Assembly: GCF_964204645.1 (NCBI RefSeq)
Contig: NC_134033.1
Location: 15,260,655-15,324,654, forward strand
Origin: Tubulanus polymorphus
Taxonomy: Eukaryota; Animalia; Nemertea
Reading direction: 5' to 3'
DNA: 64,000 nucleotides
Positions 6,431 through 56,707 of the stretch are shown here, piece after piece. How positions within the stretch are numbered: the stretch's first letter is position 1; each line of letters begins with the position of its first letter. The notes beneath the pieces are model-generated. The model had not been told where the DNA came from. It was given only the letters and a program-made list of their open reading frames with translations, and did not search any database. The position numbers and the translations under genes are program-made.

Positions 6431-7630
6431 ATATAGGCGAGCCTAAAATGAATTCTACAGGCGTTCGACGTATTAAACAAAAAAAAACAGACCATTGAAT
6501 ATTCATTGACCCGCAATAACCATGTTTTAATACCGCCCAGAAAAATCATCATCCTTACAACAAGATTTGCGTCGACGAAGATATCTCAGCAGTTCACTGT
6601 ATCAGAAGAAGATGCTGGATGAAGATGAAGATGGTTTTACCTTTAATTTAATGAGGGATGTTGAACGACGACGTGATCTTTTTTTTATCTGCAAGCAGAG
6701 TTTCTCATTTAAGACTCTCATTATTAGAATTTGACCCGCAGTATCAGCCGAACCGATCAATGGCAATCAAAGGCTTCCAGCATGAATAAACGCGGCTTAT
6801 CAACTCTTCATGTCCTCCCGTTGGTAGCGCGCGGAGCACTGCACAGATAAGCACACCGCACTTACCGGGCCTCCGATCCATTCTGTACTGTCTAATAAGC
6901 TTTTTGTTTTTTGCCCGGAACGCAGGTGAAATTGGATTGACGTGGCTATCACAGTCGAAAACACGGCTTAGGGGCTTAATCTTGAAAAACGGTTACAAAG
7001 GTTCATCAAGATTGTGTAGCAGGGGAACCGAGCGCACGCTCGCTAGAGCTCGAGAGAGCCGGGGAAAGGAAGTCTCACGCAAGCGATCGTCTCTGCCTCG
7101 TCGCCACCAGTTCCAACTACTACTTGAGAGCATATAATGAGCAAATTGAAGAAGTCTCGCGCACGCGCGCGCGTCGCACACAAAAACTACACCCGAACTT
7201 TGATGATAAATGCGTAGCGTGCATGGCGAGAATTGGAAACCATTATTTAAAAGTTCTCGTGAGGCTATAAGCAGTTATCCGGGGTACAATTTATCTAAGC
7301 CCACGGGTTTTAAAGGGTCGGTACTTGGAGATGATTTGAACGACGTGGCGTCTAGCTGAACGAGCGACGGAGAGCGTTAGATCTTACCGTCACAAACACT
7401 TGATTGAAATAACTTGTAAATTCGGGATAACGCCGGATTAGCCGCTATTAGTCTGATGAATAGCCTAATACGGAGGATTATCACGTATTCGCTCGATAGG
7501 AGGCGCTTGATGTATTCACAGACACGCGCAGACGCGGGACCCTGCGTCGTTTTAGAAAAAAAACAGTTTCAAAACTAAAAGTTCGCCAGCCACTTGAAAT
7601 TCAAATCATTGAGGCCTTTAGAATTATACC

Positions 7631-8060
7631 ATTGATGAAAGACTGTATCCCCGTTGTAAAGATAATGTGATCATTACAATACAAAAACAAGTCCGAAAAT
7701 GTTTCCTTGAGCTGGCAATTTATTTCGTCGTATTTATTAATAGAATAGAATCAACATAAGAAATACTCAAGTAACAACAAAAAATCGTTAAATATATTCA
7801 TTATCCAATGGAGATCATTGATGAGCCCGTGTTGTAAAGATGATATACAGTCCCAGAGAATCCCTGAGCTAGTAGTTTATTTTGACGTTTCGACTCTATC
7901 CTGATAGTCATCTTCAGGAAAACTAGTGTCATATAACAAAATTATGAAATGTATGTGCAAAGAAAAAATGTGATTCAAAAATCTCACGAAAGAAAAGAAA
8001 ACAAGTCCTAGAACTAGTAGTTTATTATTTCAACGCTTCGGCTTATCCTCTTCAGGAAAA
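7631..8060. mobile_element. Tandem ~185 bp Penelope-like (pLTR/retrozyme-like) units
   Basis: Repeated blocks (C/G)TTGTAAAGAT...GAGCTRGYARTTTATT...TCTTCAGGAAAA, homologous to 40328-40800 and 42316-42535. Confidence 0.6.
7884..7920 (-). ncRNA. Short-stem-III hammerhead ribozyme motif
   Basis: Minus strand reads CTGAAGA-T-GAC(TATCAGGATAGA)GTC-GAAACGTC. The catalytic core is intact; stem I is weakened. Confidence 0.65.
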
Positions 8061-8196
8061 CAGGCAGAAAACAGACGTTTCAAAAAGTTCACCCAGCCCT
8101 GGAAGTGGTGGTTTTCCTCAGAAATATCCGTCGCTCTATGCGACCCCAACCACCCAGACACTCAGTTCTCGGTGATCTAAGGTGCAAACAAACCAG

Positions 8197-8351: not shown

Positions 8352-8575
8352 AGATAAAATCCCACTATATACAGATTAAAAGAATTTAAAACCAGAATTT
8401 ATTTATTAAATCAAAAATATATAAAAGACACGACGTTTCGATCTCACCCTAGAGATCATCAACAGGTGACGATGACGATGATCTCTAGGGTGAGATCGAA
8501 ATGTCGTGTCTTTGATTCAATGAATAAATTCTGGTTTTTAAATTCTTTTAATCTGTAAATAGTGGGATTTTATCT
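8352..8575. mobile_element. Penelope-like inverted repeat with two opposed degenerate hammerhead motifs
   Basis: ~100 bp inverted arms. Each carries stem II GATCTC(TAGGGT)GAGATC followed by GAAAYGTC; the cores are mutated (CTGTTGA and ATGACGA). Confidence 0.75.
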
Positions 8576-38959: not shown

Positions 38960-40038
38960 CCTTCGCCCTCTCCATGTCCGTCTCCCTCTCCCTGCTCTTC
39001 CTCTCCCTGCTCTCCCTCTCCCTCCCTCTCTCTCCCTCTCCATCTCCCTCTCCCTCTCCCTCTCCCTCTCCCTCTCCCTGTCCGTCTCCCTCTCCCTGCT
39101 CTCCCTCTCCCCCGTCTTCCCTCCCTCTCCCTGCTCTCCCTCTCCCTGCTCTCCCTCCCTCCCCCTCTCCCTCTTCTCCCTCCCTCTCCCTCTCCCTCTC
39201 CCTCTCCCCTCCCTCTCCCTCTCCCTCTCCCCTCCCTCTCCCTCTCCCTCTCCCTCTCCCTCTCCCTCTCCCTCTCCCTCTCCCTCTCCCTCTCCCTCTC
39301 CCCTCCCTCTCCCTCTCCCTCTCCCTCTCCCTCTCCCTCTCCCTCTCCCTCTCCCCTCCCTCTCCCTCTCCCTCTCCCTCTCCCTCTCCCTCTCCCTCTC
39401 CCTCTCCCTCTCCCTCTCCCTCTCCCTCTCCCTCTCCCTCTCCCTCTCCCTCTCCCTCTCCCTCTCCCTCTCCCTCTCCCTCTCCCTCTCCCTCTCCCTC
39501 TCCCTCTCCCTCTCCCTCTCCCTCTCCCTCTCCCTCTCCCTCTCCCTCTCCCTCTCCCTCTCCCTCTCCCTCTCCCTCTCCCTCTCCCTCTCCCTCTCCC
39601 TCTCCCTCTCCCTCTCCCTCTCCCTCTCCCTCTCCCTCTCCCTCTCCCTCTCCCTCTCCCTCTCCCTCTCCCTCTCCCTCTCCCTCTCCCTCTCCCTCTC
39701 CCTCTCCCTCTCCCTCTCCCTCTCCCTGTCCGTCTCCCTCTCCCTGCTCTCCCTCTCCCTGTCCGTCTCCCTCTCCCTGCTCTCCCTCTCCCCGTCTTCC
39801 CTCCCTCTCCTGCTCTCCCTCTCCCTGCTCTCCCTCCCTCCCCCTCTCCCTCTTCTCCCTCCCTCTCCCTCTCCCTCTCCCTCTCCCCTCCCTCTCCCTC
39901 TCCCTCTCTCCCTCTCCCTCTCCCTCTCCCTCTCCCTCTCCCTCTCCCTCTCCCTCTCCCTCTCCCTCTCCTCCCCTCTCCCTCTCCCTCTCCCTCTCCC
40001 TCTCCCTCTCCCTCTCCCTCTCCCTCTCCCTCTCCCCT
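38960..40038. repeat. (TCTCCC)n polypyrimidine microsatellite, ~1.1 kb
   Basis: Pure hexamer run at about 39357-39727, flanked by duplicated variant blocks. Confidence 0.98.
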
Positions 40039-40327
40039 CGACTGTGTGTTTATTGTATGTTATACGATTGCTCGATTTCAGCCACTTTACGACACAATTT
40101 ACGACACTTTGTAAGAATCCGTTTGGAGACTCTTACTCGCACACCGGGAACAAATAGACCTCAATATCCTAACAATAAGGACCCTGTACACATCACAATG
40201 TTTGTTAGTTTTAAGTGTCTCGAAAATAAGGGTCAATGGCACTTACATCGGTTCGTTTAGGCCTATACTTGAACTTATGTTTTCCCATCCTCCCGAGAAA
40301 GAATTTTTGGTGAATTTTTAACAACTC

Positions 40328-40800
40328 AATGGACTCCGTGTTGTAAGATGAAATCCTTATACGATAAAAAAAGGCCGAAAATGTTTCTTTGAGCTGGTAG
40401 TTTTTTTCAACACGTATTCTAATAGTTATCTTCGAAAATGTTCAAGTTACGACAAAAATCAGTAAAATGTTCATTATCTAGCTATTGGAGTGCACTGATG
40501 AGTCCGTGTTGTAAGGATGACAGTGGCGTCGTTGGAAGTGCAGCGACTGCAGCGACAAAAGCCGCGGCAATAATTTACTGAACGACGTTCTTTTTTCTTT
40601 GAATACCACGTTTTTTAAGAAATTAAGTCAATTCGCCGCGGCAATATCAAGAATCTGTCCAAAATCGGTATTTGGCCGCAGATATAAAACATTGCTTCCA
40701 ACGCGCCTGTGATATACACTCCTAGTGTCTCTAAAATGTTTTCTTAAGCTAGTAGTTCATTTTAAACGTTTCGATACTGTGTTACTGAAACAGTATTCTT
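40328..40800. mobile_element. Two tandem ~170 bp Penelope-like units, the second interrupted by an insertion
   Basis: TCCGTGTTGTAAG recurs at ~40335 and ~40503, and AAAATGTTT..GCTRGTAGTT is repeated. Homologous to 7631-8060. Confidence 0.6.
40521..40709. mobile_element. Small TIR element inserted in a hammerhead-like motif
   Basis: CAGTGGCGTCGTTGGAAG ... CTTCCAACGCGCCTG flanked by TGA/TGA. The paralogous empty site at ~7838 reads GATGATATAC. Confidence 0.65.
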
Positions 40801-41484
40801 GAACATGTGTCCTGCTAGGTACGGCCAGGGAAGTGTCATTACACTTCCCCGGTACGGCCCTCCCAGAATCTCAATCATCGGAGCATTGCGTAATTGTACA
40901 CACCATTAATATATCATTCAGAATTAAGACTATAATTCAAAATACCTCGATAAAATTTATGCTATAATTCAAAATAATGAAATCTCTTTAGGATCAATAG
41001 TGAGGCATTAGGACCTCGATTTAATCGGAATCTCAATCATATACCCAACCATAAAAAGACACCCAGCCGAGCACAAACCACGAACAACAGATTTTATACA
41101 GCCCTTTCTATTCAAACTTCAATTCGTCGCTTTTATCCGCATAGAAATTTATACTATGTAAAAAAAAACATCCATAATAAAAAAAAACTCGTCAACAATA
41201 AAACTATTGAAATTATTGAAATAATGATCCCATGACTGTCGGTACAATAAGCACAATGCACGTATATGTTGTAAATGGCTATTTTTAGCGTTTAAGTAGG
41301 TGTCTTTTTTGTTTACGAATATAATTTCTGATCGGTAGTTTTATAATGGGAAAACTGAACTTTTGAAACTGCTTTTTATCAAGGTGGTATAATTTGATAG
41401 GGAGTGAATTTGAAACGGGTGCCCATTGGGTTCCCAACTGTCAATCGACAATCTGCAGTCCTGAAACACAGTCGTCAGACACAC

Positions 41485-41990: not shown

Positions 41991-42338
41991 TATTCATGAT
42001 CCCGACCACTAGGAACGTTAGGGTACATATCTCCGAGGACTGAGTCACAAGCTGTACCGCTGCAAGAACTCTCAGGGACATATGTCACTTCTAACAGTCC
42101 CTATGTTCCTATGTGTTCAATGAATGGAATAAATCAGTTAAAGTTTGTTTGAGTTAAAACCTCTCGAAAACTTCATTTACATTTAACACATTTCATATTC
42201 ATTGGAATAGAATAGGATTTGTTTACACTCCGTAACCATTTCTATACGGGGAAAAATAGAGTATCTACATTATTACAAAAACTGAAAATAAAAGTATTTG
42301 AACACGATTGGTAGAACACTATATCCGTGTTGACGCGA

Positions 42339-42535
42339 TGAGGAGAGAATCCCACAATGATAATAAAAAGTCCGAAAATGAAACTTCGAGATAGTAGTTT
42401 ATTTCAACGTTTCGACTATATCCTAATATTATTCCTGAAGATGACTATTAGGATATAGTCGAAACGTTGAAATAAACTACTATCTCGAAGTTTCATTTTC
42501 GGACTTTTTATTATCATTGTGGGATTCTCTCCTCA
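42339..42535. mobile_element. Penelope-like inverted repeat (90 bp perfect arms)
   Basis: 42339-42428 is the reverse complement of 42446-42535, with a 17 nt spacer. Confidence 0.85.
42429..42475 (+). ncRNA. Short-stem-III hammerhead ribozyme motif, intact core
   Basis: TTATTC-CTGAAGA-T-GACTAT(TAGGAT)ATAGTC-GAAACGTT-GAAATAA. Confidence 0.75.
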
Positions 42536-52803: not shown

Positions 52804-52901
52804 CCCTCGGTAGCTCAGTTGGTAGAGCGGAGGACTGTAGAAAGGCATCTGTCTCCAGAGCTGAACTCCTTAGGTCGCTGGTTCAAATCCAGTCCGAGGG
52901 C
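52804..52901 (+). tRNA. tRNA-Tyr(GTA) with a 25 nt intron (52841-52865)
   Basis: Acceptor stem CCCTCGG/CCGAGGG, D arm GCTC/GAGC, anticodon GTA at 52837-39, intron after position 37, T arm GCTGG-TTCAAAT-CCAGT. Confidence 0.92.
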
Positions 52902-53126: not shown

Positions 53127-53212
53127 CTTTTACAACAAAAAAACTTTGAGTAAATAAATGAAGAAATCCCACACTTCGAATTTAAAATTATACGATAAAA
53201 TTTATTATTTTG

Positions 53213-53260
53213 AAACCACAACGTTTCGGCTGTTGACTAACAGCCATCATCAGGTGGATT
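53213..53260 (-). ncRNA. Short-stem-III hammerhead ribozyme motif, intact
   Basis: Minus strand reads AATCCAC-CTGATGA-T-GGCTGT(TAGTCA)ACAGCC-GAAACGTT-GTGGTTT: stem I CCAC/GTGG and a 6 bp stem II. Confidence 0.8.
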
Positions 53261-53664
53261 GATGATGGCTGTTGAGTATATCTAGAAACGATTTCCACAA
53301 TCCCAAAGATAACCCACGTTACGAAGCAGAATCTGGAAACGTCAAAATCCACGATCAGTTCTAGTTTTTTCTTCAGTGTTTTCCGCAATGCCTACAGGAA
53401 ATGTTGTTGTTGCAATGTGACGACATCGTTGAGCGATAATCGATTCACGGCAACGCGTAGGTGAATATTGAAAGTGGCAAAATGAGAAGTCGTTCAATCA
53501 CAATTACCGTTATGCAAAACTTAGTCTCTTCTCTGATTCGAAGTCGAATGTCTCCAGATTATCAAATCTAAGAGGCACCCCATCATTTTACTAATCGGTA
53601 CTCTAAAGACCAATCAATTACAGATTAAAGATATAGATGTTCAATGCATAGTTATTATTTAGTA

Positions 53665-53780
53665 CACCAGATGATGACTGATGAAGTCTTTAGCCGAAAC
53701 GTCGCGCAAATATAATATACACTTCAATTCATTAAGAGAACTTTTCATCTTAAGCTGAATTTATCGTGGGATTTCTCTAA
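53665..53780 (+). mobile_element. Degenerate hammerhead motif with family tail
   Basis: CAGATGA-T-GACTGA...TTAGCC-GAAACGTC, followed by GTGGGATTTCT at ~53766. Confidence 0.5.
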
Positions 53781-54606
53781 GTATGAGGCGCCGGAATAAT
53801 TGACTGAAATCCTTCTCTGATTCACAATCGAATGTCCCCCGATTATCAAATCTAAGAGGCACCCCATCATTTGATAATTGGTACTTTAAAGACCAATCAA
53901 TTATAGACTCGAACAGCGGGTTGAGACTTGTACATACTGCATATAGTTATATCTCTCTCTCTTTAAAGTGTTAAGTTGATAATTCCGATCTCGTACGGAC
54001 GAAACGGCGACGAATCCGGTAATCACCATAATAAATAAAATTCTCAAATTAACCCAATAACAACAACAGAGAGACGAGAGTCGTACTAATTACCGCATAA
54101 CACGTTTAGAGAACAGCGAGCGTGCCCGAGCGAATAGATTCGATTATTTGAGAAACGAATAATGGCACTTACACCGGAATGATAATCAAACCTCTATGGA
54201 ATCGGTATAAACGCTATCGAACCGGGCACGAATAAGAAGTTGTTCCGTTTATTCAATTATTCCACGATTAGTACGTGACTAATCTTATATTGTTACGGAA
54301 TGTTTGCCTACCTGAATATCAAGTTTAAACCTAATTGTCGAAATCGGTTTTTGAATATTTGTGGTCGTTTTACCCTCGTGTCAAGGACGTTTTCATACCT
54401 TGTATATAAATTAAAAAGTTCAATGATAGAATTTTTCAAACCGACAAAATGTTTTGTACAACACAACGTTTTGGCTGTCAATTATTAAACGATATTCTCA
54501 TGAGGCCTAAAATTCATATACAAGAAGAAATTCAGATCATATTGAATTCATCTTTATTTTAGATATCTATCGGTTAATTATTGAGCTAATATAGCTATAG
54601 TTTGAC

Positions 54607-54695
54607 GACATTTCGAGTATATCCTAAAGCATATAGTCATCTTCAGGAATACTAGAGTTTCAACTAAATATAGTAATGCATGAAGATGTCTATCA
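54607..54695 (-). mobile_element. Degenerate hammerhead motif with a short inverted copy
   Basis: Minus strand CTGAAGA-T-GACTAT...ATACTC-GAAATGTC; plus-strand TGAAGATGTCTAT at ~54681. Confidence 0.55.
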
Positions 54696-55075
54696 TCAAT
54701 CTTATCAAATATTCTTTTGTATTCTTTTCTGTTTTTCTCTTCTCTTTCTTCGTAAAGTCTTGTTGTTTTCTTTATTCTAGATATTTAAACAATCGGTTAA
54801 TTATTGCGCTATAGTTTAAGCTATTCAACAATTCGACCACACACTAATACATGTACTTCGATATAAACAAAAAATCTGTATATTCGACCGCTGATCACAC
54901 AACTATATCTGCACTTCGATTTTCGTTTAGGAAATCAAACCCCCTATTTTCGCTCCCCCGGCAGGTGTTGTGGGTTTGTAAGGGAGACCAAATCAAAAAA
55001 TCAAACAAAATCCCAAAATCCACCGAGATCAAATAGAAAATGGGGTCAATCCCTATTTTAAGAGACATGAAAAAA

Positions 55076-55149
55076 AGAAGTCCCACAAATAGAATTCTAT
55101 ATGATAGAATTTATTGAAACCACAACGTTTCGGCTGTCATCGTCAGGTG
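55076..55149 (-). mobile_element. Hammerhead motif with collapsed stem II (same subfamily as 53213)
   Basis: Minus strand CAC-CTGACGA-TGACAGCC-GAAACGTT-GTGGTTTC ... GTGGGACTTCT. Confidence 0.55.
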
Positions 55150-56267
55150 CAGTAACCAGAAATAAACATTACTTTTATGGGTTTCCTTTAATAAGTTAAA
55201 TCGGACGAGAATTTTATCTCGGGACTTTATCATTTATCACAGATCTATTTGAACCGATTTAAAGGCTAGAACATTGCAACATTGTTTCTCATTTCCGATG
55301 TTTCCAGAGAACAGGCGCGCACCTGCCAGCACGAAAGACAATAATTATACAACGAAATCATTTTGCATATTTTGCATAAATGTCTAACACGCATGTAGCA
55401 TCATCAGATACATAGATAACAAAAAATCGATAATTATTTGTTTGAATACGATTGTCTGCGGGGCCCGAATTCGGGCATTATTTGATTAACAAGCGAAATG
55501 CGTATCGGGTAACGGTTGAACATTGTTACCGGTCGTCATTAGATACGAGTATGCCGACGCCAACGAATTATAAATAACAGTAACTTGTTGGAAATCGTTT
55601 GAACCGATGAAATGAAATCCGCATTTTGTTGTGAGGCGTCATTCTCTTAGCGAAAGGCGTAACATAATGGTGATAATAGAATACGGGTAAAGTCGTTATC
55701 GATTTTCGGGCTGAAGGGTTTGTTTGCTTGAATTCGCTGTAATGTATACGCAGAGTTGAGTAAATTAATCGCGGCGAAATGACGTGACAAAAGACATGAT
55801 CAAAAAGAGATTCTTTTTTCTAAAATCTTTCATTTATTATATATTATATTTTTCGTATCTAAAAATGACGATGAATTTTTTTTTGATTTTCTAAAAGTAT
55901 ATCATCCATACATAAGCATATATTGTATACTCTGTATCAAAAGTGATTTAGCTCTTTTCAATTTTCCATAGGTTTAATATATTACACTTTCTGCATCGAA
56001 AAATGATTTCAATGTATGTTACCCAATTTTTGAGGGGGATAGATGTAATTTCTCTAAATTTCTTCAGTAATCAACAAGAGATTTTTTGAATCTTCTGTGT
56101 ACGGTAGGCCTTACCCTAAATTACTGTGCTTTCTGTATAAAAAAAAAATCATTTTCTATCCATAATTCTATATTTTAATGTATACCTAACCCAATTTTTC
56201 TGGGGGTATTTCTCGATTGCATAGGTGTTGAAATGATAAGTGAAATTCTGAATTAAATCGTTTTTTA

Positions 56268-56543: not shown

Positions 56544-56707
<164 letters not shown>

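Follow-up and report, generated by a model that had tools for sequence, protein, structure and literature searches.

Does a short tandem repeat of the nemertean Tubulanus polymorphus encode self-cleaving hammerhead ribozymes on both DNA strands, or on one strand only? The question is raised by two loci, at 7590-8110 and 40290-40830, in the 64,000-nt stretch of DNA that we analysed in full (the window). The original prediction, made for these loci from the letters of the window, proposed a retrozyme-like unit whose ancestor may have processed itself in both polarities; the sequence facts that it quoted are correct in content and in position. Such an ambisense unit, if true, would be without precedent among genome-encoded animal repeats in having ribozymes in both polarities, and would link retrozymes to viroid-like replicators. 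We conclude, with a probability that we put at roughly 0.88, that each locus is a short array, old and decayed, of a 167-bp repeat derived from a Penelope-like element (PLE), with a minimal hammerhead on the minus strand only and a chance look-alike on the plus strand.

Repeat units of the two loci and their Penelope-like parent

Tandem units of about 150-165 bp stand head-to-tail at both loci, with truncated units at the array ends. From one cleavage-site homologue to the next, unit lengths come to 148, 157 and 164 nt (164 nt being counted without an insert), and these spacings bear out the head-to-tail order that had been described for both loci. The features are as follows, with identities referring to the 167-nt majority consensus.

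8032..8064, minus strand: partial upstream unit with a decayed minimal hammerhead (CUGAAGA retained, helix II mostly deleted, GAAA changed to GAAG)
7884..8031, minus strand: Unit A, 148 nt from cleavage-site homologue to cleavage-site homologue, 82% identical
7727..7883, minus strand: Unit B, 157 nt, hammerhead decayed, 77% identical
7590..7726, minus strand: Unit C, truncated at its 3' side and without a hammerhead, 78% identical
40765..40830, minus strand: partial unit with a decayed hammerhead at 40803-40765, placed by its sequence and by alignment to the PLE 5' region
40409..40764, minus strand: Unit D, 164 nt without the insert and one TGA, 77% identical
40521..40709, no strand assigned: dispersed repeat of 189 bp inside Unit D, MITE- or SINE-like, unclassified
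40290..40408, minus strand: Unit E, truncated at its 3' side, 75% identical

With identities of 75-82% and many indels, the window units are old copies. For Unit C, a blastn alignment with the 167-nt monomer spans 7623-7713 at 73% identity, and the plus strand of Unit E holds a remnant, GGACTCCGTGTTGTAAGATGA, from 40330. The core GAGTCCGTGTTGTAAAGATGA occurs four times in the window against 0.29 expected, far above chance, and has 27 matches in the genome against none for a reversed control. A genome search with 7600-8060 returned hundreds of near-identical copies of one segment, often regularly spaced or in inverted pairs. A tract of (CCCTCT)n of about 1.07 kb lies at 38966-40036, just upstream of the 40290-40830 locus; other simple repeats of the window are a perfect (TGC)55 at 56544-56707 and an (AG)n-rich tract of 440 bp at 642-1081.

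Unit D had been read as one unit split by an insert at 40521-40709 with a duplicated TGA, and the insertion is real. The target duplication, TGA, stands at 40518-40520 and again at 40710-40712. Genome-wide, the insert gave 413 first-look candidates, and the best 40, which were scored, are 85-93% identical, lie on many chromosomes and share the same boundaries, ending at query positions of about 6/7 and 195/196, which correspond to 40520/21 and 40709/10. The termini of the insert show imperfect inverted similarity (CAGTGGCGTCGTTGGAAG... / ...CTTCCAACGCGCCTG).

The relationship of the units to a PLE is seen at locus L031, where three tandem copies of a 2.86-kb element are 98-100% identical across the compared repeat blocks. 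The element has an 802-aa ORF with RVT_1 (E 6e-10) and GIY-YIG (E 9e-6) matches, and this pairing of reverse-transcriptase and GIY-YIG domains identifies it as a PLE. On its coding strand, the ATG is preceded by a hammerhead at a distance of about 115 nt. All five window units align to the stretch from this hammerhead to the ATG in minus orientation, so the plus strand of the window is the element's antisense strand.

The non-coding relatives of the window units came to light when the conserved core of the plus motif served as a search pattern and a good copy then served as the query. They form an ORF-less tandem repeat with a period of 167 bp (1037 first-look candidates) that is dense at C8:0.2-2.3 Mb, in runs of at least ten units, and is scattered on other chromosomes too. 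At G000:C8:372113-373616, ten successive unit starts are spaced 167 bp apart, and the expectation that the units would be tandem elsewhere in the genome thus holds. The 167-bp repeat often adjoins a 69-bp variant that is scarcely more than the ribozyme. The majority consensus was built for the 167-bp non-coding unit only; a single chromosome supplied 65 of the 69 full-length units, scoring having been confined to the best candidates of the genome search.

Inverted pairs of PLE fragments also occur in the window, at two places outside the arrays.

42303-42535, both strands: two 5' fragments from the young autonomous PLE family, arranged head-to-head as an inverted pair and almost the same in sequence as the copies at L031
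8422-8474, minus strand, and 8473-8505, plus strand: two inverted copies belonging to a second hammerhead family, with GAUCUC/GAGAUC as helix II, found with the covariance model R1 described below

That PLEs insert as partial tandems and as inverted pairs, of which the window thus holds examples at 42303-42535 and 8422-8505, suggests an alternative origin for the arrays themselves: their units could be pseudo-LTR fragments stacked up where autonomous PLEs inserted at the same sites, be it repeatedly, in nested form or with 5' truncation, with no separate non-autonomous family. The unit indeed covers exactly the PLE stretch from hammerhead to ATG. However, ORF-less arrays of at least ten regular 167-bp units exist elsewhere, and a regular period favours amplification of the short unit itself. 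The window units, moreover, carry the diagnostic strings of the 167-bp family (GCTCAAGGAAACATTT, ATCTTTACAACACGG) and not those of the autonomous PLE sampled. We therefore consider an origin by stacked fragments improbable and retain descent from a separate 167-bp repeat.

The minimal hammerhead of the minus strand

The motif of the 167-bp family consists, in order, of helix I (GUAUUC.../GAAUA..., about 5 bp), CUGAAGA, an extra U, helix II (6 bp in the main form, GACUAU/AUAGUC), GAAA, CG, and U-U or U-C. The only intact minimal hammerhead of both loci stands at the end of Unit A, with its core at 7917-7888 and a model span of 7926-7874. On the minus strand it reads CUGAAGA-U-GACUAUC...GAUAGAGUC-GAAA, so that the CUGANGA and GAAA boxes flank a helix II with the G10.1-C11.1 pair. 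An intact-core hammerhead had been placed on the minus strand about 35 nt past the plus copy at 7818, and it is there: it matches the strict descriptor at 7917-7888 and scores 63.3 bits (E 3e-17) at 7874-7926 with R1, a model whose training set includes this copy. R1 is a covariance model of the minimal hammerhead made from a 20-sequence alignment; it was applied to both strands of the complete window, with no filters and a limit of E<=10.

The remaining motifs of the loci have decayed to different degrees. The R1 match of the partial unit at 8032..8064, which is also aligned to the PLE 5' region, spans 8022-8064 (minus strand) with 22.8 bits (E 4e-4); for the Unit D hammerhead at 40442-40399, R1 gives 9.8 bits (E 6) on the minus strand and no match on the plus strand. 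Unit B gave no R1 match on either strand. In the hammerhead at 40803-40765, which had no R1 match at E<10, CUGAAGA has become UUCAAGA, GAAACGUU is retained, and helix II is a different, perfect 7-bp helix (AUACUGU/ACAGUAU).

In alignment A1 (20 motifs), U or A follows A9 in 20 of 20, and GAAA is followed by CG or GC, U, then H. Scanned with the strict descriptor, the loci and the window gave several distinct helix II families: GACUAU/AUAGUC, GAUCUC/GAGAUC, GCUUUUA/UAGAAGC, GGCUGUU/AACAGCC and GGGUGGAA/UUCCAUCU. In the 20-sequence alignment, helices I and II covary between families, with double changes in 10 of 11 pairs (a value that 0 of 500 shuffles reached), the helix II pairs of R1 being partly guaranteed because pairing there was a selection criterion of the aligned motifs; helix I, which lies outside the selection descriptor, covaries in 5 of 5 pairs. 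Paired cells amount to 86.8% in the same alignment, against 31-46% with the partner slid. Among the 69 full units, the strict descriptor matches the sense strand of 28 and the antisense strand of none.

Rfam hammerhead models gave no match at E<=10 in both loci or in three loci with young PLE copies (L003, L007 and L012), and at the gathering threshold the whole window yielded a tRNA only. Evidently, the Rfam models do not cover motifs that lack helix III. Membership accordingly rests on the published criteria for the minimal motif and on our own model R1. Judged on sequence, the minus-strand motif agrees with every criterion of the published Penelope-type minimal hammerhead, of which it is a putative example. 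The tRNA gene (52804-52901, plus strand; Rfam tRNA 57.8 bits) has a 28-nt insertion in the anticodon loop, which marks it as a eukaryotic tRNA with an intron; it went uncalled by ARAGORN in bacterial mode.

The window does hold hammerheads on both DNA strands, outside the arrays. The pair at 42303-42535 includes an intact minimal hammerhead at 42426-42478 (plus strand, 70 bits) and a truncated one at 42396-42445 (minus strand), and looks like a small recent inverted pseudo-LTR insertion. The members of the pair at 8422-8474 and 8473-8505 were both outside the R1 training set; their scores are 40.9 and 30.3 bits, and CUGA is changed to CUGU in the minus copy. We conclude that hammerheads on the two strands of the window are separate inverted copies, in the known inverted pseudo-LTR arrangement of PLEs, and not an ambisense unit. 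Six further matches to the minimal-hammerhead model cluster at 53210-55416, where 53262-53210 (minus strand) is an intact motif of a third family, with helix II GGCUGUU/AACAGCC and helix I CCAC/GUGG; with no ORF of at least 130 aa nearby, this cluster is probably more PLE debris.

The plus-strand motif

Removal of the insert and one TGA joins 40487-40520 to 40713-40722 and yields the plus string as it had been quoted, GGAGTGCA-CTGATGA-GTCC(GTGTTGTAA)GGAT-GATA-TACACTCC. The decayed version described for the paralogous unit is likewise present, on the plus strand of Unit B (7818-7848, TTGATGA-GCCC-GTGTTGTAA-AGAT-GATA). GAUA replaces the required GAAA in both copies, and position 3 of the 7818 copy is a U as well. 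In the reconstructed 40487 candidate, GAUA is the one core mismatch, helix II has 4 bp, helix III is absent and the fold z is -1.2; the motif at 7818-7848 fails the descriptor even when two core mismatches are allowed. On the plus strand, R1 found no match inside 7590-8110 and 40290-40830 (E<=10, filters off).

In the hammerhead architecture, helix III is built by the strand that follows GAAA, and cleavage takes place between this helix and helix I (PMC4209133). The structure that had been drawn for the plus strand is a hairpin with an internal loop and two helices. Its CUGAUGA/GAUA loop is closed by a single helix, and there is therefore no three-way junction and no scissile site; neither a helix III nor an NUH cleavage site can be placed in it. 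The 7/8 closing 'stem I' is found only in the 40487 copy and has no counterpart in the consensus.

A genome-wide consensus had been proposed as the check on the plus hammerhead, and it went against it. The antisense consensus of the family reads TTGATGA-AACAC-TCTGAGTCC-GTGTT-GTAAAGAT(A/G)ATAT, the helix being followed by GTAAAG. It has U instead of C3, hence no CUGAUGA, and a U inserted after G12; GUAAA or GAUA stands in the place of GAAA, and helix III and an NUH site are both absent. On the antisense strand, GAAA follows the helix in 0 of 69 units and in 0 of 21 sampled copies. CTGATGA occurs on that strand only in the copy at 40495-40501 and in about two linked copies on C1. Among 21 copies sampled regardless of the box, CTGATGAG was found in one, the others reading ...ACACTC(T/C)GAGTCC or similar, and the CTGATGA at 40495 is thus a private change of CTCTGAG.

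The origin of the plus-strand letters can be read from the sense strand. The plus motif complements a segment that is conserved on the sense strand, UCAUC..ACAACAC-loop-GUGUU-UCAUCAAUGG; its 'UGAUGA' is the complement of UCAUCA adjoining the relic start codon, and its 'stem II' region is a small hairpin that shares its stem, but not its loop, with the PLE. The antisense strand of the L031 PLE reads GGTAG-AACAC...GTGTT-GACGCG and has neither box. The 5-bp inverted repeat AACAC/GUGUU lies between the hammerhead and the (relic) start codon, at about 76-100 of the consensus (sense) and at about 4915-4890 of L031 (minus strand). The 167-bp unit and the autonomous PLE have both kept it, with the loops GGACUCAGA and GGAUAUU respectively, and its stem shows no covariation.

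We conclude that the plus-strand 'hammerhead' is a chance look-alike that arose in a few copies after private mutations. The ambisense, viroid-like reading, in which the ancestor was a viroid-like retrozyme with a self-cleaving hammerhead in each polarity and the plus motif is a decayed remnant, is therefore unsupported, and we regard it as very improbable. It could draw on one window copy with a perfect CTGATGA followed by a 4-bp helix (40495-40518) and on the recurrence of CTGATGAG in two linked C1 copies, but GAAA, helix III and NUH are absent on the antisense strand from every copy and from the consensus, and the covariance model is silent on the plus strand.

The antisense consensus itself is hammerhead-like if two core deviations are admitted (TTGATGA-AACAC/GTGTT-GTAAAG, matched by 61 of 69 units), yet a match of that quality arises in dinucleotide shuffles of the unit at a frequency of 6% (5-bp helix) to 15% (4-bp helix). 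The two deviations, the U at C3 and the U inserted within G12-A13, fall on positions that established mutational work has found invariant in the hammerhead. The helix AACAC/GUGUU is symmetric and so is equally formed on the sense strand, and the parent-type PLE lacks either box on its antisense strand. That the UUGAUGA-AACAC(loop)GUGUU-GUAAAG of these units is the fossil of a functional antisense hammerhead, and the ancestor thus ambisense, is in our judgement even less probable than the ambisense reading at large.

Folded as a circle, the antisense monomer is more stable than its shuffles (z -2.9), which would also suit an ambisense unit, and the sense monomer has no extra stability (z 0.09). 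The asymmetry of G-U pairing alone may lie behind this difference.

That the plus-strand UGAUGA...CUGA belongs to a box C/D snoRNA-like or k-turn RNA is scarcely credible, since the Rfam plus matches that suggest it (Tetrahymena C/D snoRNA models, SNORD97 and SNORD49; 13-20 bits, E 2.8-6.7) are all far under the gathering scores of 37-75 bits with E>1, UGAUGA is not conserved in the 167-bp family, the boxes have no adjoining terminal stem, and the sequence is a decayed repeat copy. The weak Rfam snoRNA and miRNA matches at the loci were set aside as chance or inverted repeats.

Place among known elements and possible mode of spread

The motifs of PLEs have a long helix II and a short helix I and are proposed to act as dimers that build helix III (PMC4209133; also PMC7761336). 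Published minimal hammerheads cleave weakly, and as dimers only (PMC4209133); for dimer cleavage, a passage of PMC7761336 cites Lunse, Weinberg & Breaker 2017. The motif described here resembles the minimal hammerhead of PLE pseudo-LTRs (Cervera & de la Pena 2014, PMC4209133) in its core boxes, in the extra nucleotide between A9 and G10.1 and in the G10.1-C11.1 pair. Helix II of 6-7 bp, helix I of about 5 bp and a palindromic CG or GC for helix III are further points of likeness (PMC4209133), as are the position upstream of an ORF with RT and GIY-YIG and the tandem or inverted copies. At the level of the motif we see no substantive difference; here, the motif stands also on an ORF-less 167-bp unit, and the window copies are mostly dead.

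The metazoan non-LTR retrozymes (Cervera & de la Pena 2020, PMC7229834) are likewise non-coding, AT-rich repeats of 150-450 bp in head-to-tail order. They share with the present repeat one hammerhead per unit, in one polarity, the coexistence with autonomous PLEs and homology to PLE termini (PMC7229834), and an origin from PLEs has been argued for them (bioRxiv 10.64898/2026.07.22.740005). As a repeat, the family has what defines them: a 167-bp period, at least 10 consecutive units and no ORF, the window units being 148-164 nt long. Two features differ. Published retrozymes have a canonical type-I hammerhead with loop 1-loop 2 contacts, whereas here, in the minimal PLE variant, helix I is open and loop 1 is missing; and published retrozyme circles are highly self-paired, in contrast to the sense monomer here with its z of 0.09. 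With both the canonical type-I hammerhead and the self-paired monomer absent, we file the family as a PLE-derived hammerhead tandem repeat. Its motif appears to be a member of the PLE minimal-hammerhead class, and the repeat would work like a non-LTR retrozyme minus those two features. Of the retrozyme-like candidate originally proposed, the tandem, hammerhead-bearing units thus stand, on the minus strand, and the second polarity does not.

Members of the Avsunviroidae carry complete, conserved three-helix hammerheads in both polarities. The HDV-like circles of toads and termites are viroid-like and have hammerheads in both polarities as well (PMC7761336). The only idea that the present repeat has in common with viroid-like RNAs is a small unit that self-cleaves from multimers: they have full hammerheads on both strands, whereas the second strand here is without GAAA, helix III, a cleavage site or a conserved CUGAUGA. 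Nor does the ancestral unit emerge as one that self-processed in both polarities, the plus strand lacking a hammerhead in the consensus, in the copies and in the parent PLE; at strict settings the descriptor matched it in 0 of 69 units.

Our preferred reading, a decayed array of the PLE-derived repeat, suggests the following course. The repeat descends from the 5' non-coding part of a PLE, from the pseudo-LTR hammerhead through to the start codon; a parent-type PLE is still intact in the genome. The sense strand of the unit is the minus strand of the window, and each ancestral unit carried one Penelope-type minimal type-I hammerhead, with a helix I of about 5 bp, CUGAAGA, an extra U, a 6-bp helix II (GACUAU/AUAGUC) and GAAA, followed by a palindromic CG replacing helix III and a U-U/C cleavage site. 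In array transcripts, neighbouring motifs could pair via the ACGU palindrome to form helix III, and the resulting dimeric hammerheads would, on the model of the literature, cleave the transcripts into monomers of about 167 nt. The monomers may be ligated into circles and could be copied back into DNA by the Penelope enzyme (PMC7229834, PMC7761336, bioRxiv 10.64898/2026.07.22.740005). Arrays would also enlarge through unequal exchange at the DNA level.

At the two window loci, the core is intact in one of five motifs, and no cleavage is expected from a minimal motif that stands alone; by this sequence evidence, both loci are most likely inert. The young C8 units (L059-L088) show at the C11.1 position 31 C, 31 G and 7 T among 69. 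Their arrays are 94-97% homogeneous, although half of the units have a broken helix II pair. Since half of these units lack C11.1, array growth needs no intact ribozyme, and DNA-level amplification must contribute. The loss of C11.1, together with the z of 0.09 for the sense circle, argues against an RNA-driven life cycle for the arrays here. It is unlikely, if less so than any of the alternatives weighed above, that the intact 167-nt arrays elsewhere in the genome are live minimal-hammerhead retrozymes that make very small circles.

What remains is a species-specific example of a known process, in which PLEs shed their hammerhead-bearing terminal region as short tandem repeats. The half of the young units that lack C11.1 adds that such arrays can expand with broken ribozymes.
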